A stretch of DNA of 63,945 nt, the filler included, from Guillardia theta CCMP2712 (lineage: Eukaryota > Protista > Cryptophyta): the NCBI RefSeq assembly GCF_000315625.1. It is 5 parts of 5 records of this genome, joined end to end, with 100 filler letters (N's around TTAATTAATTAA, not from the genome) between each part and the next. Parts side by side here need not be neighbours in the genome. Positions count along the whole stretch, not along the records: positions 37,598 to 53,898 come from NW_005434327.1; 4 more parts are not named here. One strand, written 5' to 3'. Shown one piece after another: positions 37,598 to 53,898 of the stretch. The notes under the pieces are model-generated. The model worked only from the letters and a program-made list of their open reading frames with translations, made no database searches and had not been told where the DNA came from. Each line of letters opens with the position of its first letter. Positions within the stretch are counted from its first letter, which is position 1. The translations under genes and the position numbers were made by a program.

Positions 37598-40500
37598 TCC
37601 TCCCTCCTCCTCCTCCTCCTCCCTCCCTCCCTCCTCCTCCTCCTCCTCCCTCCCTCCTCCTCCCCCTCCCCTCTCCCCCTCCCCTCCCCTCCCCTCTTTT
37701 TTCTTCTCCTGTCCTCCTCTACCTTAGCAAGGTCGCGTAGATTGAAGGTGTAATGAGATTTCAGCGGAGTAGGAAGGAGCTCCTTGGAGACAGTCGTGAA
37801 GACTTCCAGAGTAGCCTGGGATGGGAACGATGAGCATGGAAAGTAAGACGAAGAAGAAAGGGGAGGAGGGCAGAGGAGAGCAGAAGAGAGCAGAGCAGGG
37901 AGAAGCGAAGAGAGGAGGAGCAAGACGCACGGAGCAGGGAGCAGGGGAGCAGGGGAGCAGGGGAGCAGGGGGGCAGGGGAGCAGGGGAGCAGGGGAGCAG
38001 GGGAGCAGGGAGCAGGGAGCAGGGAGCAGGGAGCAGGGAGCAGGGAGCAGGGAGTTACCTGGACCACAGGGTTCACCACGGCCCCGGCAGAGATGGAGGG
38101 GAACTGCTGCATGAACCAGTTGAGGATCGTACTGAAGATCCTACTCATCCCCTCCTCGTCGATTGGAGTGACGCTGATGATGTTGTACCACCTCGTGTAC
38201 CTGCAAGTTATGTGCGTCCTCCCTCCTCCCGGCAGCCCCATGCAGGAGACAAACACCATGTCTATCAAGGTCCTCCACTCTATCTCCTTCCTGTCCCACC
38301 AGCCTCCCCAGTGCATCCATTGCCGCAGGATCTCGATAGGAGGCTGAGCGCCGTACGTCTCCTTGGCCGGCATGTTGAGGTCGTCGACGAAGACGACCAT
38401 TTTCTTGCCCAGGGGAGGTCCAAACACTCCCTTCCTCCTCTTGTCCACCTTGCCATCGATGATGTCCTGAGTTTGATTGGCCTTGGTCTGAGCTGAGAAG
38501 TTCATGAAATGAGGGACTAACTTTTCTCCCATCCCCCTCATCAGCTTGTCTTTCACCATGACTGACTTGCCCGTCCCCGTGTCCCCGACGAACAGGCAGT
38601 GGTAGTCGTTGCTCAGCAGCGTCGTCATGATGCTTGTGTACCTGACTGTGTCCATCGTAGGGACGAGGATGTCTTGGAACTCAGTCCCTGCGGGTATCGA
38701 GTAGGAAGGGATCGTCTCCAGCCAGCCCAACCACCGTCCCTTGTGCTGGTCGAAGCACCAGTCGTACATGGACCCCTTGTCGGGGAGAGGAGCAGTCAGC
38801 TTCGGGGCCTCGGGGGAGGAGAGGAGGGTTCTTAGCGTCTCAGTCATCGACATCCTCCCCTTGAGGTCTGTACTGCATCCTACTGACCAGATCAGTGAGA
38901 ACAAGAAACCTCCGTCCACTCGCTTCGCCGCGTCCCCGGGCCCGATCTTGCCGGCTTCCTCCGGGTCGTAGAAGGAGTCCAGCATGCACTTGAACAGCTT
39001 GAAGAGGCTCATCACCAGCTCAGTATCCTTGGTCACCACCGGCTCCTTGCACTCCCTGCGGAGGAGGCGGAGGAGGGGAGGGACGAAGTGGTCTAGGAGC
39101 TTGCTGATCTGCGCCTTGCTCCCTTCCAGGCTCGGGGGGAGCGTCTCGAACCAAGAGTCTCGCAGCTCCTGCCACTGGAACATATGCGGCTCCATGAGCA
39201 CCATGCCGTTCCTCGAGACGGTGGCGGGGGAGGCGGCAGCGAGGTCCTCGGGCTCGAAGACCATGGTCATAGTGCTGGTGAGTTTGATGATCTCCCCTGA
39301 GTTGAGGCAGAGCTTCTTGTTGTCATCCATGACAGTGTTCATGTTCTCGATCCAGATCGCGTCCACGGGCCCATCAAACATGATCCACTTCCTCTTCACC
39401 TTGAGCTCAGCGCTCGTCTCCATCTGTGCACACTTGCGCACTAGCGACGCTCCGATGCCCTCGATCCACTCGCGCGACACAGGGTCGAAGTTGCCGTAGA
39501 TCTGGTCGATGGTGATGGACTTGGGGTTCAGGCTGTACATGAGCACGTCTTCGAACTTGCTCTTGTCCTCTACGTTGCACATACCGTGCTGAAGGACCTT
39601 GAACACGCTCGTCTTCATCGACATTGTGAGCCCTACCACCATCAGGCTGTGCCGCACTGTGATAGTCTCGTACAGCTGGATGCACTTCTTGAGCAGGTTC
39701 GCCGTCGGCTGGACATTAGCAAACCCGTGCGTCTCTGGGCTCTTCTTGGTCAGCTCCCCGCACGCCTGCTGCATCCCCTCCATGAGGATCGAGTAGTCGG
39801 GAGAGGGGATCTTCAGCCCAAGGAACAGGTCGGAGGTGATCCCTTCAAACAGCGGCAGGTCTGCGTCGACGAACTTGGGAAGGTTCACATCGTTGATAGC
39901 TCGCAGTACAAGCACATCCTCCCTCTCCTCCAGGTACTTGAGCTTCAGCAGCCCAGCAGCCGTCAGGATCGACTTGACAGCCCTCATGCCGAAGTCGTAG
40001 TGGACCTGTCAAACGCGTCAGCAGCTGCGAGACCCTCCAACTCCAGCAGGCACCTGGGACGAGAGCTGCTCCGAGGAGATCTGGAGGCTCTTGACTAGCT
40101 TGCGGGCGAGGTCGCGGGCCTCGGAGAAGCCGTAGGAGTAGAGGCAGATTTCAGATATCATGGCGTAGTCAGGCACCATCATCGCACAAGGGCGGAAGAG
40201 AGCCTTGAGGTTGTCGGGGAGCTCGGAGCGACCGGCATACCCGGGGTTCATGGTGATGAAGGACGAGTAGCCCTTGATGCAGACTATGTCGCTGCCCTCG
40301 AAGAGCAGGCGGGGGAGGCCGCGGCGGATCGCGTCGTTGAGAGAGAGGATCTGCTGTGCGATCACAGAAAGTACCTCCAGGTCGATCCTGTTGAACTCGT
40401 CGAAGCAGGCCCAGGCCCCGCAGCTCGCAAGCCCCTTGAAGAACTTCGCCATGGCAAGGTAGTCAAGCCCGTCACTGCAGTTGAAGACGATGCACTGCTT

Positions 40501-43500
40501 CGCAATCGCCTTGGCAAGATCCTTCACCGTCTCAGTCTTCCCGGTCCCGGCCGGGCCCTCCGGGGCTCCTCCCAGGGAGAGGTGGAGGGCGCCGAAGAGG
40601 GTGCGGTAGCAGCGGTCAGTCAGCGGGGTGACAACTAGCCGCATGCTGTTGCCAAGGTACTCGTAGCCGTAAGCGAGGGACGCATTCATCATCCTAGTCA
40701 TCACCACCTCCTCCCCCTTCCTGTGCCATGGCGCGTCGTAGCTGGCGACCTGCAGGTAGTACCTCAGCTGGGAGTTCCAGTCGAACTCCTCGGGGGCAGA
40801 GCAGTTGTTGCGGATGAGCAGAGTGACGACGTCCTTGTTGTGCACGTCCAGGACAACCATGGCCCCGAGGATCAGTCGCACCTGCTTCCCTATCGAACCT
40901 CGCACGAGCTGCACGATGTCAGCCAGCTCTGCCTGCATCCGTTCCTCCACCGCTGTCACCCCCCGCACTCCTCCCTTCCTCAGCGCCTCCTCCACGTCCT
41001 TGGTCCAGAACAGACAGTCCGCAGCCAGCACAATCATCCCCGTCCACTCCTGCACGAACTGAGTCCTGGCCGTGTGCTTGTACGCCTCGAAGGCTCTCTG
41101 TCCGATATCCTTGAGCGTGTCTCGCATCGAAGTCTCCATCTCCAGCAGCCATCGCTCGACACTCCCTCTGTTTCTCTCAGCATCCGGCTCCACCGCCGTT
41201 GCCAGGGGAACAACCTCTCCCTCCCCGCTGACCATGGCCAGGATGTCAAGGTTCTTCTCGCCGCTCTGCAGCTCCTGCGGCGTCTTGCCCCGGAACTGAA
41301 CGTCGTTGATCGCCTCGAAGCACTTGGAGAGATGGGGCACCACCCGGCGGGGGTCCTTTGTCTCCGAGAGGATATCGAGGAGCTCGTCGTTGGAGAGGAA
41401 GTAGAACCTTGGGAAGGAGCTCCTTTTCGTCTCGAGGTAGTCGTTCAGTCCCTTCTGTACCACGTCAAGCATCTTGTTGCACTCGACGAAGTTCGCCTTC
41501 AGGTTCTCGATCGCCATGACCTGCAGCACCTGCGGCGCCTGGCTGGCCGCGTCCATGGTGGCCCTCCAGATCTGGTCCACCTTCTGAAACCTGCGGCCCT
41601 CAGTCGGCATCTGCCGCATGATGTCCGGGGAGGCGAAGATGGGCTCGAGGTAGAGCCAGGTCTTCTGCAGCTTCAGCCACTCGTCCAGTACTTCCTGCAT
41701 GTAGAACAGCCGGTGGTTCCACTCCAGCACCACGTTCTCCAGCGCCTTGGCGTACGGCGACCCTCTCATGGCCTGCACCTTGACGATCTGGTCGTCCAGC
41801 AGGGTTATGATGTCATCAACAGCCCGCACGACGAACGTCCCTGTGTCCTTGTAGGGCTGCAGCTCGAAGGTCAGGTCCCGCCAGTCTTGCTTCATCCTCT
41901 CCAGGTTCCTCTCGAACGAGTACTCCTTGCTTGCCACCTCGGAGATCTCCGTGATCACGTCCCCGTACTTCTCGATCCCAAGCTCCAGCATGTACTTGAG
42001 CGTCAGCGACACGTCCGGTTTTATCTCCACCCCGACCGTGGTTGACAGCTGGGCCCAGTGCCGGTCGCGCATGCCGGGGGTGCGGAGGCCCTGGATGATG
42101 GGGAGGTAGGGCTTGAACTGGTCCAGCTTCTCCTTGAGGATCTTGGCGACCTGCTGCGGCTCCTTCTTGCCCTCGAACGTTCTCTCAGCCTTGAAGGCGT
42201 ACTTCCACCACTGCATCACGTTCTGCTCGATCGTCTCGGCGTCCAGGGAGGTGAAGGGCCCGTACATCCAGTTGGGGAAGGAGCTGTTGAAGGCCGCGGC
42301 GATGGTCCAGAGGTTGGCGTACGGCTCGAAGTCCTTGGAGATCCTGTCAATGTCTTCAAAGTCCGTCACCTCCAGGTTGAACAGTTTCTCCCTGGAGTTG
42401 ACCAGCACCGCCTTGTCCTTGGCCTCTTTGAGCCTCATCTGGAGCAGCTGCACGTTGCCGGCGTACTCCTCCGCCGAGTCGAAGTCGGAGTAGGTATAAA
42501 GCTTCTCGATCTCCACCTCCACAGAGGACAGCTCTTGCTTGAACTCCACCGTGCTCTCGTGCAGCTCCTGCATGAACTTCATCCTCTCCTCTTCCTGCCT
42601 CTCCTGCGACTCGGCCCTGATCCTGATCACGTTGGACGGCTGCCCAAAGACCTCCCAGAACACTCCAACGTCGTGCTGGCTGATCTCAAACTGGAAATCG
42701 TTGAGCAGCTCAACATCCTTGCCGATGTCGGCGATCTCGATCTCCAGCTCGTTCACTTCCACGTGCAGCCCAGCGATGTACTCCTGCAGCTCTGAGAGCT
42801 CCTCCGCGGACCTCGGGATCTTCTTGATACGAGCGACGATGCCGTCGAAGTGTTCCTTGGTCGAGCTGCTCCTCTCAACCATCTGCCTGGAGACGCTGAG
42901 CAGGATCCGCTGGCTGACGTCGTTGACCTTCCCCTGCACGTCCTGCTTGAACTGCTTCAGCGCGATCTGGTGCATCCTCAGAGGGACTGAGTGCGGGAAC
43001 AGATCTTGGATCTTGTCCATGGAGCTCTTGAACCGCAGGATCTCAGCCCTGACGTCGGAGAGCGGGTGTGCGTTCTCCTGGAACTCGAGCATGTACTTGT
43101 CCGTGTCTGTCGTCACCAGGAACATGTGCGGGTCCAGCAGGTGGAGGAGAGCTCGGGGCGCGAAGAAGCTGTCGGCAATGCTGGCCTGGACGGAGTGGAT
43201 GCAGTCAACGAAGAAAGGGTCCTGGGGGTTGAGGAAGACTAGTTTCTTCTGGTCGGGGATGGCGTCGATGACGTCGATGGAAAAGGGAGGGAGGTCGTTG
43301 AGCTTGGCGAGCATGGAGTGAATCACGTCGGCAACTCGCGCCTGGATCGTCTCCTCCTGCGGGAGGAAGCCGACGGCCAGCTCGTCCGACGAGTAGGTGA
43401 CGGACAGGTTGAAGATAGGCGGCCACTGACAGAGGGTCCCGTAGACCAGGTTCGCAGGAAGCTGCTCCTGTTCCCCCCAGAAGTTTCCCTTGGCGTCCTG

Positions 43501-45525
43501 GCCGTCGGCAGGGCGGGGAAGTCGGTTGAAGGACTTGAAGTGCAGGGTGAACTTCTCGACGTCTCGCATCACCGCAGACCGCAGGATGTCCGCTAGCATC
43601 TTGTTCGCAAGCACGCAGAGACGCATGTACTTGACCCGGCTTGACGCCTGCATCGTGTGCTCAGGCCCGAACAGGTTCTCCTCCTCCGAGTAGGCGCTCA
43701 GCACGGCGTCGCTCATGGAGTCCATGACAACTTCCATCATGTGGTTGATGCTGCTGGTGAACGCTGAAGTGTGCAGCTCAACAAACTCGTCGATGGTGAC
43801 GGTCCTGCTCATGGTCCACAGGAAGTCGCACTTGTATATGCTCATGGCATGCTTCCGGATCGTCTGCAAGGCCTTGAGCATGAATCTCGAGGACCACGAC
43901 AGGTTGTTCTCCACAGACCCGCGCGAAGATCGGAAGTTGCCCTTGACCTCAGTCAGCGTGTCATGGATGGCAGAGACTGACAGGTCCTCGGGGAAAGGCC
44001 TGACGAAGCAGGCCCCGAATCCAGGCAGCCGGATGTTGCGGGGGGGGAGGCGGCGTTCTCCCTCCACAAAGATCGGGTCGACCATGTGCCGAGGGTCGTC
44101 GGCAGGGTAGGAAACTCTGTGGTAGACCAGGTTCATCGTCCTTGCATACTGGTGCAGCACTTCCTCTACCAGCAGCTGCTGCCCCTTCACGCGCTCTTGC
44201 CACACCTTGGACGCCCCAAGCCGCTGCACCACAGCATGGAACTGCTGGGGGAGGAGCTGCTGAGCCTGTACAGTCGACATCTTGTCGACGATGCGCTCGT
44301 AGCGAAAGATCTCCTCACATCGCTTTCTGTTGTCCAGCGCCTGCAGCCGGCGCCTTGTCACGTGGTCCACTGACTCGAAAGGGTGGAAGCAGATATTCAG
44401 CCTGCTGACCCACTTCTGCTTATCGTTGCACAGCCACTGTATGAGAAACGAGGCATCCTCCGTCCTATGGTCGAGGACCCTGCACGGCTGCCAAGAGGAG
44501 GTCCCGTCGTTGTAATGCCACAGGGACAGAGCTACCTTATCGCTCTCCTCCTCCTGGTCTGAGAACTGCACGAAAGCATCGGTCTCAAACGTGTGATCGT
44601 CGAAGTAGTCCAGCGGGAAGAAAGAAGGAGTCTGGAGCTTGGAGTCCTCTGAGTCCTTGTCTTGCAGCATCATGTTCAGATCATGCTCTTCCTTCTCCCT
44701 CGCAACTGCCTTCACAATCTCGTTCAAGTCCGTCGTCGTTTTCTGTGTCCACTTTGTTTGCGCGAAAGAGCGGTTCTTGGTCTTGTCAAGCCGCACGGTG
44801 TCGGTGGAGCCGATCAAGCTCTGGAGACCATGCAGCGACCGCTTGCTCAGGGTGTGTCTTGGAACATCGACCTCGCGCTTCTTGCTCCCGATGCTGGGCG
44901 GTTTGTACGTGTGCTTGACGATGCTTCTATCGTTCTCCTCGAACTCCACGAAGCTTTCTAATGCTCCGTCCTTCTCATCTGCTCGGGCGTCTACATCGGG
45001 CCCGCGCGTCTTGGCACTCGCAAAGGGAAATTTCTTGACGGTGTCCTTGACTAGGTACGTTGGCTCCTTCAGTTTCTATCAACATGGTCAGAGTGCTGAC
45101 GTGCCTTCCAACGAGCTGCCAGTGCCCTACCTTCATCTCCATCTCCACCTTGCTCGGGAGCTCCCTGGCGAGTGTGACCCTGGCTGCTGGTTGAGAAGAG
45201 GAGGGGAACAGCATCAAGATCGACCTCCACTCGCCCACTTTGGGCTGTTTGGTGACCATGGAATGCTTCGTTGCAACGAATCCTGTTAGTCCACGAGTCA
45301 GCCAGCTAGCAGCGGTGATGGAGGAGGGGGAGGAGGATTGATCACCCTTGTCCGTTGGGATAGACTGATCCTTGTCAGACTTGGCATCCTCGAACTGTCC
45401 GGTTACGAGCAGTCATATAGAGCGTTGAAGACCAATGCGAATTCAACCTTGATGAATCGATGGAAAGCATCTTCAGTCCTCTTCGGCCTGTCTTCAGGGA
45501 TGGCGCCTTGCTCCGTCTCGCTCAT
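37598..45525 (-). CDS. Axonemal inner-arm dynein heavy chain, DNAH1-like; truncated after AAA3 by a linker
   Basis: Linker motifs WLYLEPIF and FPRFYFLSNDELL. AAA1 GPAGTGKT, CFDEFNRI, FITMNPGYAGRSELPDNLK. AAA2 [25 protein letters not shown]. AAA3 GDTGTGKS. The N-terminal WVSRLNICF...LDNRKRCEEIFRY segment resembles DNAH1. Confidence 0.97.
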
Positions 45526-46024
45526 TGTTGTTCCTCGTCTTTCATACCTGGTCCAAGCACAAAGGTCACAGCCCTTCAACTTGTAACATGACCTAGCAGC
45601 AGCGATCTAGGAATCGATCATCACTTTCCATCCTCCTGGCCCTTATGTGTTCTTGATCCAGCTACATCACCAGTAAGCCTCCTCCTCTCCCCATGTTCCT
45701 CGGATCGAATTGTCGTATCCTACACAGTCTGCTCCTCCTCTCTTTCCTTCTGCTCCTTCTCTCTTTCCTTCTCTTCCCCATTTTAACCGCAGCCGTTGAC
45801 TAGTTTTTCAACCCGCGCCTCGCTGACCATGGGTGACCCCTACTTCTGTACACCCCACCTATCCAAAGAAGGGAAACAATATACCAAATGACCCGTACTG
45901 ATGGCCTACCCTACCCCGATGAAATTTGTCAAACCTTGTCACTAAAACATACTGCCCGGTACCGTGACACAACATGGACCGGGCCCCGGGCCCGTGGGCG
46001 ATAGTCACTGAGTACTAGGAGATC

Positions 46025-46340
46025 AGCGAGAGAGCGAGAGAAGCGGCGGAGATGGTAACTATCTACTTCTGTAGTACTTGCTAGGTGCTTAGATGAGACT
46101 ACTAACAGTGTGCTTAGAGGAGATGGTGAGTATTCTACTTTCTGAGTGCTTAGAGGAGATGGTATCTACTTTCTGAGTGCTTAGAGGAGATGGTGACTAT
46201 TCTACTTTCTCAGTGCTTAGAGGAGATGGTGACTATCTCTCTTTACTCAAAGTTAAGTTAAAAATCTGTAGTACTTGCTAGGTGCTTAGATGAGACTACC
46301 AACTGTGCTTAGAGGAGATGGTGACTATTCTACTTTCTAA
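46025..46340. repeat. Degenerate minisatellite, core GTGCTTAGAGGAGATGGTGACTATTCTACTTTCT, with a duplicated ~65-nt block
   Basis: About 6 imperfect copies; blocks at ~46068 and ~46265 are near-identical. Confidence 0.85.
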
Positions 46341-46492
46341 GTTCCATCTCTCCGAGTCAGTCTCTGAGTGCTGGTTCTTGAAGCGAGGCTCGATGAACTT
46401 GTTAGGAGAGACGTCCAATCACATTCATTGCAACAATAATTGCATTGCTATCTTGAAACTGTCTGTACCGGCCCAGAACGCCGGCTCGATTA

Positions 46493-49400
46493 TTATCGCA
46501 GCATCTCGAGAACTTGCGTCATGGTGGGTCTGTCGCTGCTGTTGTGGCAGAGACATCTGGCCATGAGGTCGGAGATCTTCCTCGTTGACGTGCTAGGGAT
46601 TTCAAGTTTCTTCTGTCGGATGCAGACGGCGGTGATGACCTGCATGGCACGTCAAGGCTCGATCAAGGCATGTACTCATGACCTCAATCGCGTTTGTGCA
46701 TTCAGAGTGAGGAATGAATGCGGTTTCAATCTGGCAAACAGGCGATATCACAACTTCGCAAACAAAGTGCAGCAAAAACCTCCCACAACACAACCCCAAA
46801 GCTGTACACATCTGCTCTGATGTAATCTTCCGGCTGAGTGACGACGTCAGATGAGAAGAAGGCAAGCAGCGAAGTAGTCTCGTTTGCTGACTCACATTTT
46901 GACACTCTCCTTTCAAGATCTCAGGTGCTGACCATGCAGGAGTACCGATGCTTGCTCCTGCTGTCGTCGTGACGCTTCCTATTTCTTTTGACAACCCAAA
47001 ATCACAAATCTTGCAAGCATTCTCTGTCGTCAAGAGAACATTCAAGCTCTTGAAGTCCCTATGTGCAATCTGCAAACCTGATCACTCCTTTCTGTTTCAA
47101 TCAACAGTTTGATCTCACCTCTTTTGCATGAAGGTATTCGAGACCGAAAGCAAGCTCCGTCATGATTCTAACACGTTCTGCCTCAGCCGGGACTCCGTAC
47201 GTGTCGAGGTGATCCCGCAAATCTCCTCCCTGCCTCCTTGTCAGCATCATCCGACTCACAAGCACTTGACCTGTACACACCTGGGCTAGTTCGGTCACTA
47301 GGATCGGACTAGTAGGGTCGTCGGTACAGATCCCGAACATGCGAAGGACGTAGGGGTGAGACAGGCGGCAGAGCAGGTCCATCTCTCTGGAGAAATTGTC
47401 CTGAGCTTTGCGCATCTGAGTCATGTTGTATCCTCGCATGTCAAAAACTTTGGCGCAAACTGCCTGGTTGGAGTAGGTTGCACGATACATCAAGCAAGAC
47501 CCTCCCTTAGCAAATGGCTCTGCCTCCAGCTGTAGCTGCGAGGCAGGGATGGAGAAGCGCTCGAGGTTGGAGGATCGCCGCTTCAAGGACGCTTCTTTCC
47601 CGCTGAGACGGGTTGCTTGCTCCAACACCTTGTTCACATCACTCCGCAGACTCTGGATCTCACCTGGGACAAGCATCACAACTATCTAATGAAGCTTATC
47701 CATCACCTCCCAGACTCTGCAGCTGTTCCAACACAGGTCAGCTGCCTATCCATCTGAGGAAGCAGTGAAGAGCGATGCAGGATCTGGTTGACTTCTATGC
47801 GCGTGTCTGCCTGCAGTCGGCGCATGAGGTTGCTTGTCACGAGCTCCAACTGAGCTTGCACTTCCTTGGACTGGGTCTGTCTCGTCATGTTCAGCAAAGT
47901 TGAAGTCTCAGACTCATCACGTCTCACAAGGAAATTCTTCGAGGTCCAGAAGGCTAACAAGCTGCCGGCAACCCCCCGCGACTTTTCATGGCGAGATGTG
48001 ATCAGGTCGCGATATTGCTTAAGCTTGTGCAGAACTTGGTCAAGCAGCTGCTTCGTGATGCCATCCAGTCCCTTCACTTGCTCAGCAAGCCTGGCAAGGC
48101 TGACCATCACCCCGGAGCACCAGGCGGACATTCTTTGACACTCTTGCTCGGCAGCCCTGTAGATGTCAACATGCCTCTTGATTTCACTGAGGACCTCGAA
48201 GATGCTTCCAAAGATCGGAGCTGCTTTGCCAATACTTAACACACAGTTTGCAACGCTTCCAGCTACATCTTGCACCCAAGGTGTTCCTGTAAAGACCATG
48301 TCTTCAAGGTCTGAGGTCTTGTCATCCAAGGATGACAGGTCAGACATCAAGTTAGCTTCTTTGCTTTCCTTAGGGTTGGATGAAGAGCTTGATAATTTTG
48401 CCCGTTGTCTTCGTCTTCTGTAAAAATAAACACCAGAGGTGACGATGACAACAGCTGCTGCTCCGCCAATTATCGCTCCAATAATAGCGACGCTCGGAGA
48501 GGATGACTGTGCTGTTGAAAAACTAGTATCACAATCATGACCAAGATGTTTGTCAAAATCAATGGATCGGCAGGGAGGAACGCAAAAAACACAATTGTTC
48601 TCACAAAGAATATGAATTCGAAATACTTTGAGTGGATGCGGCGGCAGCAGCAGGAGGAGTTAAACTTATTTGCGACGTGTTAGGCGCTGACAGAAGAGAT
48701 CAACTAAAGCAGAAGAGGTCGAGAAAGGGATAAAAATAATGCAACAATCATTCGTGTGTGATATTCTGAAACAAGCCTACCCGGCATTGACAAGGTTGTG
48801 GGTGCCGCGGTTGTTGTCGCTGGTATAAACAGATCAGATCATGAGAAGCACAACGACAACCTTGGAGGTGAAAACGAAAGAACATGGTCAAACAACAAAA
48901 CTTCTTGGAGTAACCTTGTGGTTGGACGGATGGAGTGATTGCCAATGAGTAAGTCGTATCCGAGGTACAAACACAATCGCATGGTCCTGAGATGCTTGGA
49001 TACTCGCATGCTATTCCAGTCTCAACCAAACAAGGGCATAGAGAACAAGTTTGGTCTAAAAGAATTTTTCGAACTGAACTTTGAACTGAGGAGTTTGCAT
49101 CCAAGACGTACAACCATGGAGTGGCATCCGACATTGCTAACTTGGCTGGATAATAGAAAGTTGCTGTTGATGCTCCCCCATCTTGCGAGCCTACTTGACC
49201 CGAACCAGCCAGCCTGTAGGTAGTTCCGTCTTGGATGGACACTTTTCTTACCTGACTGTTGAATCCATCAGCAACATAGAGCCACAGCCCGTCCTTTGAC
49301 ACGGCGATGTCGAAACCGTACACGAGCGACACGGGCGGCATGACGGGAGGAGCGACCAAATTCCAAACGTCAACACCAGGCAAGGCAGTGACTTTCCCAT

Positions 49401-50304
49401 CAAGGAGAGAAACCTTTTTGATTCGAAAAGTGCTGTAATCGGCGACGTACAAGAAATCGTTGCTCGGAGACACAGCCACATTTTGCGGAAAATTCAAGTT
49501 GACGGAGTTCAAGGTGTGCACGACACAACTGTTAGGCGATGCGAATATATCAGAGATAGCAGGGTTGTAGACGATCACCCGGACTGCATGGTTCTGTGTG
49601 TCGGCCACGTAAAGGCATTCTTGTACTGCAGGGCAAGGATCCACGCATGTAGCAGTGTAGAAAGCATCCCTGCGGCACGTTCCCGTAGCCATCCCAGTGG
49701 GATAGTTGAAAGCTGAATCTTTGCACGTCCCGTCCAGGTATCCGGGCTGGAGACGACTACTAGCAAAGATAATCGTTTGTGAACTCACGATTAAACCGCC
49801 TGTGGTAGTGTTCAAGAACAATCTCATTATCTGATGCATCCCCGTGTCTGAAATGAAGATATTCTCTGCATTCACTGCAAGTCTACATCTTGGAGGTCGT
49901 CCGGCTGCGGTCTCTTCAAATGCAGGAGACTGATAAATCATCGTTCCCTGCATTCCTTCTTGAAAAGCAGTGACCTGCCAGATAGATCCGTCCATTCCAA
50001 ACAGATACAATGATTCTCCGTCGTGCGAGGTCGCAAGGTCAGCGTCACACAAAACCGAAGAGTGTATTGACGTTGTATGAGAGCGAACGACACTCTCAGC
50101 CACCGACCCGCTAGCCTGGCTCTGGCATGTTGAAACACATGTTGAGTGCCATACGTTGGTGCAAGTTCCCCCTCCTGGCCATGGTATCACTTCAGAGCTG
50201 TAGACCGAAGGTGCCTGGCGCCAGACGAGCAGGAGAGCTACTCGGATGCGCGACAGCAGCATGGGCCTGCCATGGCGTTGCTTCAGTCTTGGGCGGGTGG
50301 ACAT
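46493..50304 (-). CDS. Single-pass receptor-like TKL kinase: signal peptide, NHL-repeat ectodomain, TM helix, MLKL/MCAfunc-like helical domain, kinase
   Basis: NHL repeats FNYPTGMA, LYVADTQNHAVR, LNFPQNVAV, LYVADGFNSQVRK. TM VAIIGAIIGGAAAVVIVTSGVYFY-RRRR at 48420-48491 is in frame with the 47703-48350 ORF. Kinase motifs VCAK, IAHRDFKSLNVLL, DFG, GTPAWSAPE, DVYSFGVVLWE. Stop at 46493. Confidence 0.88.
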
Positions 50305-50495
50305 GCCCCCGGTAACTCGATGCTGGAACCTGGCTGGAACCTGGTTGGAAATTTCATGGGCAAAAAATCCAAACAGATTTCAAAAGCTGTGTCAGAAATA
50401 TTAAGGCTAGCAACAATAATTTGAAAACATGTGAACAAATATAGAACGTAATGAGATACAGTAAATAGGCCCGGGACTTACAAATCACATTTAGG

Positions 50496-50837
50496 GAATG
50501 ACTCACCAGCAGGAATGACCCGCAGGAATGACCAGCAGGAATGACCAGCAGGAATGACCAGCAGGAATGACCAGCAGGAATGACCAGCAGGAATGACCAG
50601 CAGGAATGACCAGCAGGAATGACCAGCACGCGGCAGGAATGACCAGCAGGAATGACCAGCAGGAATGACCGTACCAGCAGGAATGACCAGCAGGAATGAC
50701 CAGCAGGAATGACCAGCAGGAATGACCAGCAGGAATGACCAGCAGGAATGACCAGCAGGAATGACCAGCCTGGCAGCAGGAATGACCAGCAGGAATGACC
50801 AGCAGGAATGACCAGCAGGAATGACCAGCAGGAATGC
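50496..50837. repeat. 13-bp tandem repeat (AGGAATGACCAGC)n, about 25 copies
   Basis: Directly visible, with a few short interruptions and no unique spacers. Confidence 0.97.
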
Positions 50838-51497
50838 CATGATGACGCCACTGGGCCACTGGCCAGGACTGATGACCCTGGCAGCAGGCCTGACCCCCGG
50901 GGCCGCCGAAATGGGGCCCGGCCAGTCCGATCCGACCTGGCACCGCCGGGTTTCGTCCAATGCCAAAGCCTGACGAGCACAATGAATGAGAAACAGTGTC
51001 ACACCGTTCAAATTTCTAAGCCTACCGGCACAACAGTCGGCTCTCAGGCCGGAGGCTCGCCGTTTGGCCTGTGCGACAGTCACTGAGTGTCCGATCAGGG
51101 ACTTGATTTTTAACTTAACGGAAGTTTGACGGTAAAGGATCACCGATTCTACCGTGAGTCTACAAGTGGAACTGATTTGCCACTGGCTGGAATTTCTTGA
51201 CTCCCGGCCCGGCCCCGGCCCGGTCACCCGGGTTCCGGGCCAGGCCGGGGGTCAGGGCCCCGGTGACCGTAAGTCACTGAGCCTCCGCGCCCGGCATGGG
51301 ACCGCCCGGTCGGCCCCCCGGGCCTGATGAGAAAGCAGATGAGGCTAGCGTGAATGGAGGATGCTGCCTGAGGAGAGGAGAGAGGAGAGAGGAGAGAGGA
51401 GAGGAGAGAAGAGAGAGGAGAGAGGAGAGAGGAGAGAGGAGAGAGGAGAGAGGAGTGAGAAGAGACAAAATATCGTATGACATTGTATTTCTTCTAG

Positions 51498-52720
51498 ATG
51501 GTGCGGCAGGCTCGGTTGTTGCCCATGCTCTTCATCCCAGCCGTTCACTCCTTCTCCATCTCTCTCCATGGCTGCAGGTAGCATGCACACGTCTCTTCTC
51601 CTGTTCCTCACCCTCAAGCCAGGATGCTCTCACTCCGCTCTGCCCTGTCAAGGCGAGGAGAGGAAGGGTCCTTGCTCAAGGCGCTCACCCTGATGTCAGG
51701 ACGCACGCTCGACACTTGTCAACTCAGAGGATGTGCGATGGTACCTCCTCTCCTTGCGCTGACCCTCCTCTACTTGCGCTGACCCTCCTCTCCTTGCGCT
51801 GACCCTCCTCTACTTGCGCTGACCCTCCTCTCCTTGCGCTGACCCTCCTCTCCTTGCGCTGACCCTCCTCTCCTTGCGCTGACCNNNNNNNNNNNNNNNN
51901 NNNNNNNNNNNNNNNNNNNNNNNNNNNNNNNNNNNNNNNNNNNNNNNNNNNNNNNNNNNNNNNNNNNNNNNNNNNNNNNNNNNNTACTTGCGCTGACCCT
52001 CCTCTCCTTGCGCTGACCCTCCTCTACTTGCGCTGACCCTCCTCTCCTTGCGCTGACCCTCCTCTACTTGCGCTGACCCTCCTCTCCTTGCGCTGACCCT
52101 CCTCTCTGACCCCACGTGCAGCATCGGCGGAGCAGCGAGTGAGTGTTACCGGTAAGGACGTAACGTGGCGGCTAGTGCTGAAAAAACGGACATGCTCGCA
52201 GGATCAGTGTACGAGGGGCCTCCGGAGTCTCCCAGGGTCACCTTGTTCACCAAGGCTGACTGCACTCTCTGCGATAAGGTTGCTGCTTGTCTCGGGTTGA
52301 GCGGTGCCATGTCGAAACTTCTCCTCCTTCCTTTCCCACCTGCCTGCCCTCCTGCCCTCCTGCCCTCTGCCCTCCTGCCCTCCTGCCTGCCTCCCCTTCC
52401 CTCTTGGCTGCCTGCCCCACTGCCTTCCCTGCTTGCCTGCTGCCATCCTCTATCCCTCCCTCCCTCATGTCGCTTCTGAGTGTGAGGACAGGTGAAGGTT
52501 GTGCTGAAGGACTGCAAGGAGAGTCATCCCCACAGTCTGTCGCAGGTGAGCGAGAGGAGAAGAGCAAGTACAACAAAGTTGCGTGATAGGCATGAGGAGA
52601 CTGATTGCAAGTGGTCATTGAGATGATGGAGATGATGATGATGGAGATGATGATGATGGAGATGATGATGGAGATGATGATGATGGAGATGGAGATGATG
52701 ATGATGGAGATGATGATGGA

Positions 52721-52761
<41 letters not shown>

Positions 52762-52969
52762 CGGAGATGATGATGATGGAGATGATGATGGAGATGATAG
52801 TGGAGATGATGATGATGGAGATGGAGATGATAAATTCGAGATGATGGAGATGATGATGGAGGAGATGATGATGGAGATGATGGAAGAGATGATGATGGAG
52901 ATGGAGGAGATGATGATGATGATGGAGATGGAGGAGATGATGATAGAGGAGATGATGATGGAGATGAGA

Positions 52970-53033
<64 letters not shown>

Positions 53034-53742
53034 ATGATGATGATGATGGAGATGATGATGGAGACGATGCTGGAGATGGAGGAGATGATAGTGGAGATGA
53101 TGATGATAGTGGAGATGATGGAGATAGAGATGGAGATGATGGTAGGAATGGAGATGAAGACAATGAGGAGGAGGAGCATTCATACTCGACTGACTATAAA
53201 TTGCATCATCAAAGATTGACATCACGGATCCGGAGCATGAAGACTGGTGGAAGCGGTCTTGACAATCTCGATTGGAAGTTGATCGGTGACGTTGCTTGCA
53301 GTTACAAGTACGACATCCCTGTACTTCACCTCAACGGACTCTACTGGACGAAGCACAAGTTGGACATGGCGGCAGGTTTGAGGTGTTTGGAGGAGCAGGT
53401 AAAGTTTTTTGACGACGCAACAGCGGGGGAGGCGTTGGAAGCAGCAAGAAAGTGAGTGAAGGGCTGCGGCAGTGATAGCTTGTTGTAGAGTGTGGATAGA
53501 TATTCTACGGCGCACATTGCGCATGTTTGTGGTGATTCTTTGGTTTGGATTTATTGATAAGATTCTTGTCCTTCAGTTGTTTTGATTTGTCGATGGTTCT
53601 TGATCTTCTTGTTCTTGTTCTTGTTCTTGTTCTTGTTTTCTTCTTGTTTTCTTCTCTTGCTTGTCTTTCCACCTCACGTTCTCTCAGCGGATCTTTCAAG
53701 CAGCAACGAGGCGAGCCTGACGCTTCTCGTTTGGAACATTAA
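51498..53742 (+). CDS. Glutaredoxin-like (DUF836-type) protein with a probable bipartite leader
   Basis: VTLFTKADCTLCDK | VKVVLKDCKESHPHSLSQ | IDITDPEHEDW | YKYDIPVLHLNG | ...GEPDASRLEH*. N-terminus MVRQARLLPMLFIPAVHS-F. Confidence 0.82.
51745..52106. repeat. 20-bp tandem repeat (TTGCGCTGACCCTCCTCT[C/A]C)n, intronic, containing a 100-N gap
   Basis: Directly visible on both sides of the gap 51885-51984. Confidence 0.95.
52620..53165. repeat. (ATG)/(GAG)-rich microsatellite, intronic
   Basis: Directly visible between glutaredoxin-like exons. Confidence 0.95.
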
Positions 53743-53898
53743 AAATGTGACAAGGCAACCAAGATTGAAACATGCCGAGAGAAGGAGGGAGGGAGGGAGG
53801 GAGGGAGGGAGGGAGGGAGGAGGAGGAGGAAGAGAGAGGAGGGAGAGGAGGGAGAGGAGGGAGAGGAGGAGGAGGAGGGAGAAGAGAGGAGGGGGGGA

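Follow-up and report, generated by a model that had tools for sequence, protein, structure and literature searches.

Animal MLKL, the effector of necroptosis, is built from a four-helix bundle at the N-terminus, two brace helices and a pseudokinase. In animals, bundles of the MLKL type are known as executioners in the cytosol; plants have them as immune components, and in fungi they head NLR proteins. In each case they are switched on by a separate sensor, and the bundles of MLKL, of plant coiled-coil (CC) domains and of HeLo domains sit at a free N-terminus. The gene described here lies on the minus strand of a 63,945-nucleotide stretch of Guillardia theta CCMP2712 DNA (GCF_000315625.1; the whole stretch is called the window, and positions count along it), in the part that comes from NW_005434327.1 (positions 37,598 to 53,898). 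It is probably the G. theta member of a small cryptophyte and metagenome family of single-pass receptor kinases with an MLKL_N-type bundle, in a copy that has been broken by a gap of two nucleotides. The plan of the family comprises a variable ectodomain, a transmembrane (TM) helix, a linker, a bundle that is probably of a divergent MLKL_N type, a brace-like helix together with a long coiled-coil one, and a TKL kinase whose catalytic residues are preserved; some members have a WW domain at the C-terminus in addition.

The likeness to animal MLKL consists of the order of helical bundle, brace-like helices and kinase fold, and of a structural model that aligns to residues 1-140 of the MLKL N-terminal domain, in an alignment that takes in the short extra helix found between bundle helix three and the last one. 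In contrast to animal MLKL, the family members are membrane-anchored receptors with an ectodomain and with a bundle that is internal, past the TM helix and a linker; their kinase keeps its catalytic residues, no RIPK3-type partner is implied, and the sequence similarity is below threshold. By language-model features, the nearest named clusters are MLKL_N (PF22215), MCAfunc (PF19584) and RPW8 (PF05659), and the order of bundle and then kinase is as in plant MLKLs and wheat Pm13 (PMC10951266). The plant MLKLs differ in being cytosolic, without a signal peptide, ectodomain or TM helix upstream of the bundle, and the Pfam score here is below the gathering cut-off. A signal peptide, a variable ectodomain, one TM helix with a basic stop-transfer sequence and a cytosolic TKL-type kinase are features shared with the single-pass receptor kinases of plants, animals and other protists, but the family differs in its juxtamembrane region, with a folded MLKL_N-like bundle (~150 residues) and a coiled-coil helix (~50 residues).

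The preliminary description of this locus recognized an all-helical, MLKL-like region of about 200 residues. The region is all-helical in the model, but a 51-nt intron lies inside it, and only with this intron removed does the bundle match Pfam MLKL_N (E 0.0015, 18.5 bits, profile positions 3-129 of 142); the unspliced exon had no MLKL_N match in Pfam, and the unspliced helical region had none of any kind by phmmer against the Protein Data Bank (PDB). In an alignment of 37 family members (A1), seven matched MLKL_N in the same register (profile positions about 3-125), and no other Pfam family was matched by more than one. When the A1 profile was searched against all PDB sequences, two de novo designs came first, followed by seven distinct MLKL sequences (E 0.03-0.34), with profile positions 43-164 aligned to MLKL residues 11-130; no other natural family was comparable, the next being the proteasome subunit RPN7 at E about 0.8. 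A model built by AF2 with A1 (pLDDT 82, pTM 0.78) has helices at 44-61, 68-90, 96-122, 127-134 and 137-158 and a brace-like helix at 163-177, in the numbering of residues 78-274 of P0001 (UniRef A0A7S4JTG6_GUITH), the MMETSP open reading frame (ORF) that is the sole close database protein. On the Foldseek list for this model, the MLKL N-terminal domain 2msv has the highest TM-score (0.56; probability 0.96, E 0.29). The ESM language model places the domain, among named clusters, next to MLKL_N, MCAfunc, RPW8 and SesA, and nine of the ten best named matches share a family or clan with the best one. Shape searches of the Atlas with the domain found generic helical proteins only, and word-based protein searches found family members only, with no bridge to annotated MLKL_N proteins. 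From four concordant, individually weak tests, it is quite likely that the helical domain is a divergent member of the MLKL_N/MCAfunc/RPW8 group.

An exhaustive phmmer search of 1.84 billion representatives returned only 49 relatives at E <= 1e-3, for which the only named sources are G. theta and Baffinella frigidus CCMP2293, the rest being metagenomes. On a 7.1-kb contig (L002), a single ORF runs from a Cys-rich ectodomain through a TM helix into the first half of the bundle; past an in-frame 131-nt GT-AG intron come the remaining half, a complete kinase and a WW domain. If this one intron is accepted, the full receptor-kinase layout is present. Linker, bundle and kinase are found together in single ORFs of P0079 (690 aa) and P0078 (515 aa), and likewise of P0059, P0060 and P0025, while ectodomain, TM helix and bundle share one ORF in P0007, P0037, P0043 and P0070. 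Since relatives carry ectodomain, TM helix, bundle and kinase in one frame, the predicted architecture of receptor, bundle and kinase is real and exists in the family. Relatives with swapped ectodomains, the search for which had been proposed at the outset, were found: the ectodomain consists of two fasciclin domains in P0007, five ephrin-receptor-like repeats in P0043 and an NHL propeller in the window, and other ectodomains are unnamed. In full-text literature searches of incomplete coverage, no transmembrane receptor with an MLKL_N-like bundle and a kinase was found described, and none in cryptophytes.

The nearest relative of the window gene is an ortholog on a marine metagenome contig (L001), with 78% nucleotide identity over the cytosolic exons. 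Upstream of its TM helix is a 218-aa open frame (L001:555-1208) with no detectable similarity to the NHL part of the window and no Pfam match, which could be an ectodomain swap or a case of very fast divergence. The WW domain follows the kinase in some receptors (L002:3780-3884, P0079:656-686). A model of the cytosolic region of P0078 has a linker helix of 54 residues; its kinase C-lobe is poor (pTM 0.41), and domain packing is not readable from the model.

The bundle also occurs in soluble relatives. P0062 and P0015 (JGI metagenome) have, next after the helical domain, an EF-hand-like domain of the Cbl_N2 type (38 bits, which exceeds the cut-off), an order that recalls the Cbl TKB domain (four-helix bundle, then EF-hand), with no Cbl_N match. 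P0027 of B. frigidus consists of a WW domain, the bundle, about 600 residues in common with P0045, and the start of a DEAD/ResIII helicase; in P0045 (ENA metagenome), the bundle is near the N-terminus and is followed by the region shared with P0027. With an effector-like domain placed before what may be a nucleic-acid sensor, this layout is reminiscent of immune architectures. The placement of the bundle ahead of a helicase (P0027, P0045) or of a Cbl_N2-like EF-hand (P0062) would be in favour of a portable effector role. This role is also favoured by the first helix of the bundle, which together with the conserved G.AAP.vG.vF.lL that precedes it is the second most hydrophobic part of the protein.

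Several results weigh against the MLKL_N assignment. Each MLKL_N test is individually below formal significance: the gathering cut-off of 27 bits is reached neither by the window nor by its best relative (P0013, 26.1 bits, E 6.6e-6), the best E-value for MLKL in the PDB profile search is about 0.03, and the check by AlphaFold and Foldseek that had been recommended, in which MLKL ranked highest by TM-score, gave no PDB match at E <= 1e-3. An unfiltered VIA search found MLKL (6ux8, Z 9.8, root-mean-square deviation 3.3, 132 of 152 residues; 4btf, Z 9.3) tied with the THATCH bundles of HIP1R (Z 10.4) and Sla2 (Z 10.1), ahead of the plant CC domains of Rx (8.3), NRG1 (7.3) and MLA13 (6.9), but generic helical bundles reach such Z values by arrangement alone. 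The bundle does not sit at the N-terminus: the TM helix and some 60 residues of linker precede it, its start is near residue 590, and it is internal in the soluble P0062 and P0027 as well. Its net charge across the family is about neutral (median +1) and not clearly basic, a value that tells little. The internal position and the neutral charge would argue against a simple MLKL-like pore.

The helical domain might instead be a generic juxtamembrane bundle for regulation or dimerization (THATCH-, Cbl-4H- or HAMP-like) that tunes the kinase and does not act on membranes, in which case the likeness to MLKL is at the level of the fold only and the family is one of ordinary receptor kinases. This possibility is the less likely one. 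In its favour, the THATCH cores score slightly above MLKL and the Cbl TKB four-helix domain scores comparably (Z 7.6), the domain of P0062 and P0015 stands directly before a Cbl_N2 EF-hand-like domain as in Cbl TKB, the family kinase looks active unlike that of animal MLKL, and the domain is internal rather than N-terminal. On the other hand, no family member has any sequence-level signal for THATCH or Cbl (I_LWEQ, Cbl_N and HAMP were matched by none of the 37 aligned members, MLKL_N by seven in the same register), MLKL is the only natural protein picked out by the PDB profile search, the ESM neighbours are MLKL_N, MCAfunc and RPW8, and, as a portable effector module would, the domain also heads soluble proteins made of several domains (WW, bundle, helicase). 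Membership in the MLKL_N/MCAfunc/RPW8 group is accordingly the preferred reading of the domain.

The kinase that follows the bundle was expected to be of the TKL group with its K, HRD and DFG intact and a degenerate Gly loop, and the motifs AKGGSC, VCAK, HRDFKSLN, DFG and APE are all present, only the Gly loop being degenerate. The Pfam families Pkinase and PK_Tyr_Ser-Thr match three exon translations, and among solved kinases the N-lobe of the window gene is closest to TNNI3K and MLKL, and the relative P0059 to CTR1, MLK and DLK; by these similarities the kinase can be assigned to the TKL group. In the family as a whole, the Gly loop is degenerate throughout, and some members have HKD or HMD and DFN. 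Because the family kinase retains K, the catalytic N, HRD (or HKD) and DFG (or DFN), it is probably active. The window kinase thus does not show the animal MLKL trait of a pseudokinase without catalytic motifs.

At the window locus, the kinase is cut off from the bundle. The spliced mRNA, as represented in Logan contigs from three runs of three studies (X1, X2 and X4), has an ORF from the ATG of 748 aa that ends with ...TCVGTAAESGR right past the exon 5/6 junction, where the mRNA reads ...LLPQMDRQLTCVGTAAESGR and then a TGA stop codon. The MMETSP ORF P0001 ends at the same ESGR stop. The kinase is in a different frame that is open from PVLEQLQSLGGEIQSL..., starting only 11 codons before the exon 5/6 junction, and that has no stop in 315 codons spread over six exons. 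In the form in which the sequenced strain transcribes it, the window copy encodes at most a 748-aa protein with the NHL ectodomain, the TM helix and the bundle, without the kinase. The proposal of the preliminary description that sensor, bundle and kinase are joined in one polypeptide thus fails for this copy: its ORF stops at the TGA, and the kinase is in another frame. An assembly error at this place was rejected because the genome, the three RNA assemblies and the MMETSP ORF agree.

Aligned with L001, the window has a gap of two nucleotides in exon 5 (CTGACCTGTGT--TGGAAC in the window, CTGACTAGCATCGTGGATC in L001), whereas L001 keeps the equivalent exon in a single frame (...QMDKQLTSIVDQLQDLGGE, P0021). 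When the window was read through with an X at the break, it aligned across the break in single high-scoring segment pairs to P0059 (582-1053), P0005, P0014 and others; therefore the ancestral gene was in one frame and the window copy is broken. The frame break looks recent because the kinase exons are still spliced and free of stop codons and their dN/dS ratios relative to L001 are low (0.09 in kinase exon 6 and 0.14 in exons 7-11, with 0.08 in the bundle). L001 has a lesion of its own, a TAG codon in the kinase N-lobe (L001:2429-2431) where the window has TTT, two codons past the catalytic lysine. The two closest copies are thus kinase-disabled by different lesions, even though dN/dS is about 0.1.

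Several facts count against reading the locus as a member of this receptor-kinase family. Bundle, brace and kinase are not in one frame at the window copy in the genome, the three RNA assemblies or the MMETSP ORF, and neither are signal peptide, ectodomain, TM helix and kinase on one polypeptide, as the protein is cut after the bundle; the nearest relative also has a stop codon in its kinase N-lobe; and the full-length reading is thinly backed by RNA in the sequenced strain, where the splicing of intron 1 is represented by one contig. With the kinase out of frame and intron 1 mostly retained, the locus may make no receptor at all. The window copy is a natural kinase-less truncation, useful for comparison, yet it weakens the claim for the locus.

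A full protein of receptor, bundle and kinase could still be made at the window locus if the frame were restored in one of two ways: a minor splice form might use an alternative donor (ACCT|GTGTTGG near 47735) with the usual acceptor, which gives ...QMDRQLTCEIQSL..., or the ribosome might shift by +1 at the stop, AGG-TGA-G. On paper, either route brings the kinase back into frame; the exons of the kinase are correctly spliced and intact, and a minor isoform would stay hidden in assembled contigs, which drop rare variants. Restoration is nevertheless very unlikely: the alternative-donor joint is absent from all contigs of the three runs, L001, which lacks a GT there, simply stays in one frame, and in the kinase frame the 11 codons past the break are still similar to those of the relative, as for a recent mutation and not an adapted recoding site. 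Raw reads of another run (X15) are uninformative about the frame break because their coverage is restricted to the 3' end of the gene (46300-46860). A broken copy of a receptor kinase gene that is intact elsewhere in the family remains the preferred reading of the locus.

The gene has eleven exons and ten introns, all of them GT-AG once cut shifts are applied to the spliced RNA contigs, which have no base differences or indels relative to the genome. Its position at 46493-50304 on the minus strand was upheld: the ATG at 50304 is the first of the 5'-most open frame, with RNA contigs that extend to 50307-50309, and the kinase frame ends with TAA at 46495-46493. The joints of exons 2-3, of exons 3-4 and of exons 4 through 11 are found in all three runs, while that of exons 1-2 is found in one X4 contig only. 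Intron 1 is retained in the exon 1 contigs of X1 and X2 (two of the three RNA assemblies), which run through it and end at 48781. Its retention shifts the frame to a stop codon in exon 3 before the TM helix, so that the product would be NHL-only; the retaining form would encode a secreted NHL fragment ending in exon 3. Retention of intron 1 also accounts for the start of P0001 at a Met codon in exon 2; an exact look-up of P0001 in the assemblies gave no match.

In the suggested RNA check for a single transcript, spliced contigs join the NHL exon to the exons for TM helix, helical region and kinase in one transcription unit. That the NHL part and the part with TM helix, bundle and kinase are two separate genes or transcripts, as could be supposed from the X1 and X2 exon 1 contigs that end beyond intron 1 and from the MMETSP ORF that begins in exon 2, is highly improbable and was rejected, since GT-AG joints connect exons 1-2 (X4), 2-3 and 3-4 (X1, X2, X4), the spliced frame is unbroken from the ATG through stalk, TM helix and bundle, and P0007, P0037, P0043 and P0070 hold ectodomain, TM helix and bundle in one ORF.

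The extracellular part is much as first described. Its Cys-rich ectodomain contains an NHL repeat (Pfam NHL 42.1 bits, cut-off 20) and is similar to the NHL propellers of SOQ1 and NHLRC2 (E 1e-15 to 7e-14 by phmmer against the PDB); with a Pfam score above the cut-off and similarity to solved propellers, it is an NHL beta-propeller. The S/T/P/A-rich stalk is encoded across exons 2-4, and the TM helix that follows it is the only strongly hydrophobic segment, with an RRRR stop-transfer sequence after it (about 48422-48411). The helices of the juxtamembrane linker bear the family motif F.GT... Taken together, the observations of the preliminary description were partly confirmed and its interpretation is partly supported.

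Table 1. Coordinates of the parts of the gene in the window, from the 5' end of the gene, with the exons and introns last
Feature	Position	Strand	Remarks
Predicted signal peptide, residues 1-35	50200..50304	-	MSTRPRLKQRHGRPMLLSRIRVALLLVW...; by eye from hydrophobic stretch
Cys-rich NHL beta-propeller ectodomain, residues 36-463	48916..50199	-	rest of exon 1; Pfam and phmmer against PDB
S/T/P/A-rich stalk	48627..48819	-	ATTTAAPTTLSMPAPNTSQISLTPPAAAAASTQ; exons 2-3 and intron 2; translation
TM helix, residues 503-525	48426..48494	-	SVAIIGAIIGGAAAVVIVTSGVY; highest Kyte-Doolittle window of the protein
Juxtamembrane linker, residues 531-589	48234..48410	-	Ser-rich and acidic, then two low-confidence helices
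MLKL_N-like helical bundle, residues 590-738	47736..48233	-	exon 4 (to 47928), exon 5 (from 47876)
Frame break, exon 5	47725..47736	-	2-nt gap relative to nearest relative L001, placed between 47731 and 47730
TGA stop of 748-aa ORF	47660..47662	-	exon 6 opens with it as first complete codon
Coiled-coil linker and TKL kinase, out of frame	46493..47735	-	exons 5-11; Pfam, splicing, motifs, dN/dS against L001
Kinase G-loop	47514-47494	-	
Kinase VCAK	47460-47446	-	
Kinase HRD	47063-47040	-	
Kinase DFG	47003-46995	-	
Kinase APE	46928-46920	-	
Intron 1	48914-48820	-	95 nt, GT-AG
Exon 2	48819-48781	-	joints in X1, X2, X4
Intron 2	48780-48687	-	GT-AG, spliced contigs
Exon 3	48686-48627	-	joints in X1, X2, X4
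Intron 3	48626-48512	-	115 nt, GT-AG
Intron 4	47927-47877	-	51 nt, GT-AG; inside helical region, removes VRRDESETSTLLNMTRQ
Intron 5	47706-47664	-	GT-AG, spliced contigs
Exon 6	47663-47281	-	
Intron 6	47280-47230	-	GT-AG, spliced contigs
Exon 7	47229-47119	-	
Intron 7	47118-47070	-	GT-AG, spliced contigs
Exon 8	47069-46896	-	
Intron 8	46895-46834	-	GT-AG, spliced contigs
Exon 9	46833-46780	-	
Intron 9	46779-46731	-	GT-AG, spliced contigs
Exon 10	46730-46683	-	
Intron 10	46682-46640	-	GT-AG, spliced contigs
Exon 11	starts 46639	-	

The downstream neighbour of the gene, at 37598-44949 on the minus strand, consists of two very long ORFs of 1643 aa and 813 aa that look by eye like consecutive parts of a dynein heavy chain, with the P-loop GPAGTGKTET and linker/AAA-type sequence. 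Three tandem arrays surround the gene. Some 200 nt upstream of the ATG, at 50505-50836, a 13-nt unit is repeated 26 times; a still more upstream array, at 52622-53141, is long and rich in GAT, with a unit of 12-21 nt; and downstream of the stop of the kinase frame, at 46110-46244, a 36-nt unit is repeated 3.9 times.

In intact members of the family, binding of an outside ligand would cluster the receptor through its coiled-coil linker, the kinase would autophosphorylate, and the bundle would be freed on the inner side of the plasma membrane. There it might recruit partners or, as MLKL does, disturb the membrane and so bring about ion flux or death. We infer this activation and output for the intact members; their domain order and conservation were observed. 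A bolder proposal, rather unlikely on present evidence, is that intact members are one-protein devices that both sense and execute, in which the receptor's own active kinase would release a membrane-tethered MLKL-type bundle and so cause an ion flux or the suicide of the cell when it meets a virus, a bacterium or a non-self cell. Frequent null alleles, such as the frameshift of the window and the TAG codon of L001, would fit the turnover of immune receptors.

The swapping of ectodomains on a conserved inner part suggests that this is a recognition family. Its members place a module of the MLKL kind between the membrane anchor and the apparently active kinase of a surface receptor, in a protist lineage far from animals, plants and fungi. 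If the bundle acts on membranes, no shorter route than that of this family would be known between an extracellular signal and an output of the MLKL kind, and the pairing of bundle and kinase would date from before the animal and plant versions or be independent of them.

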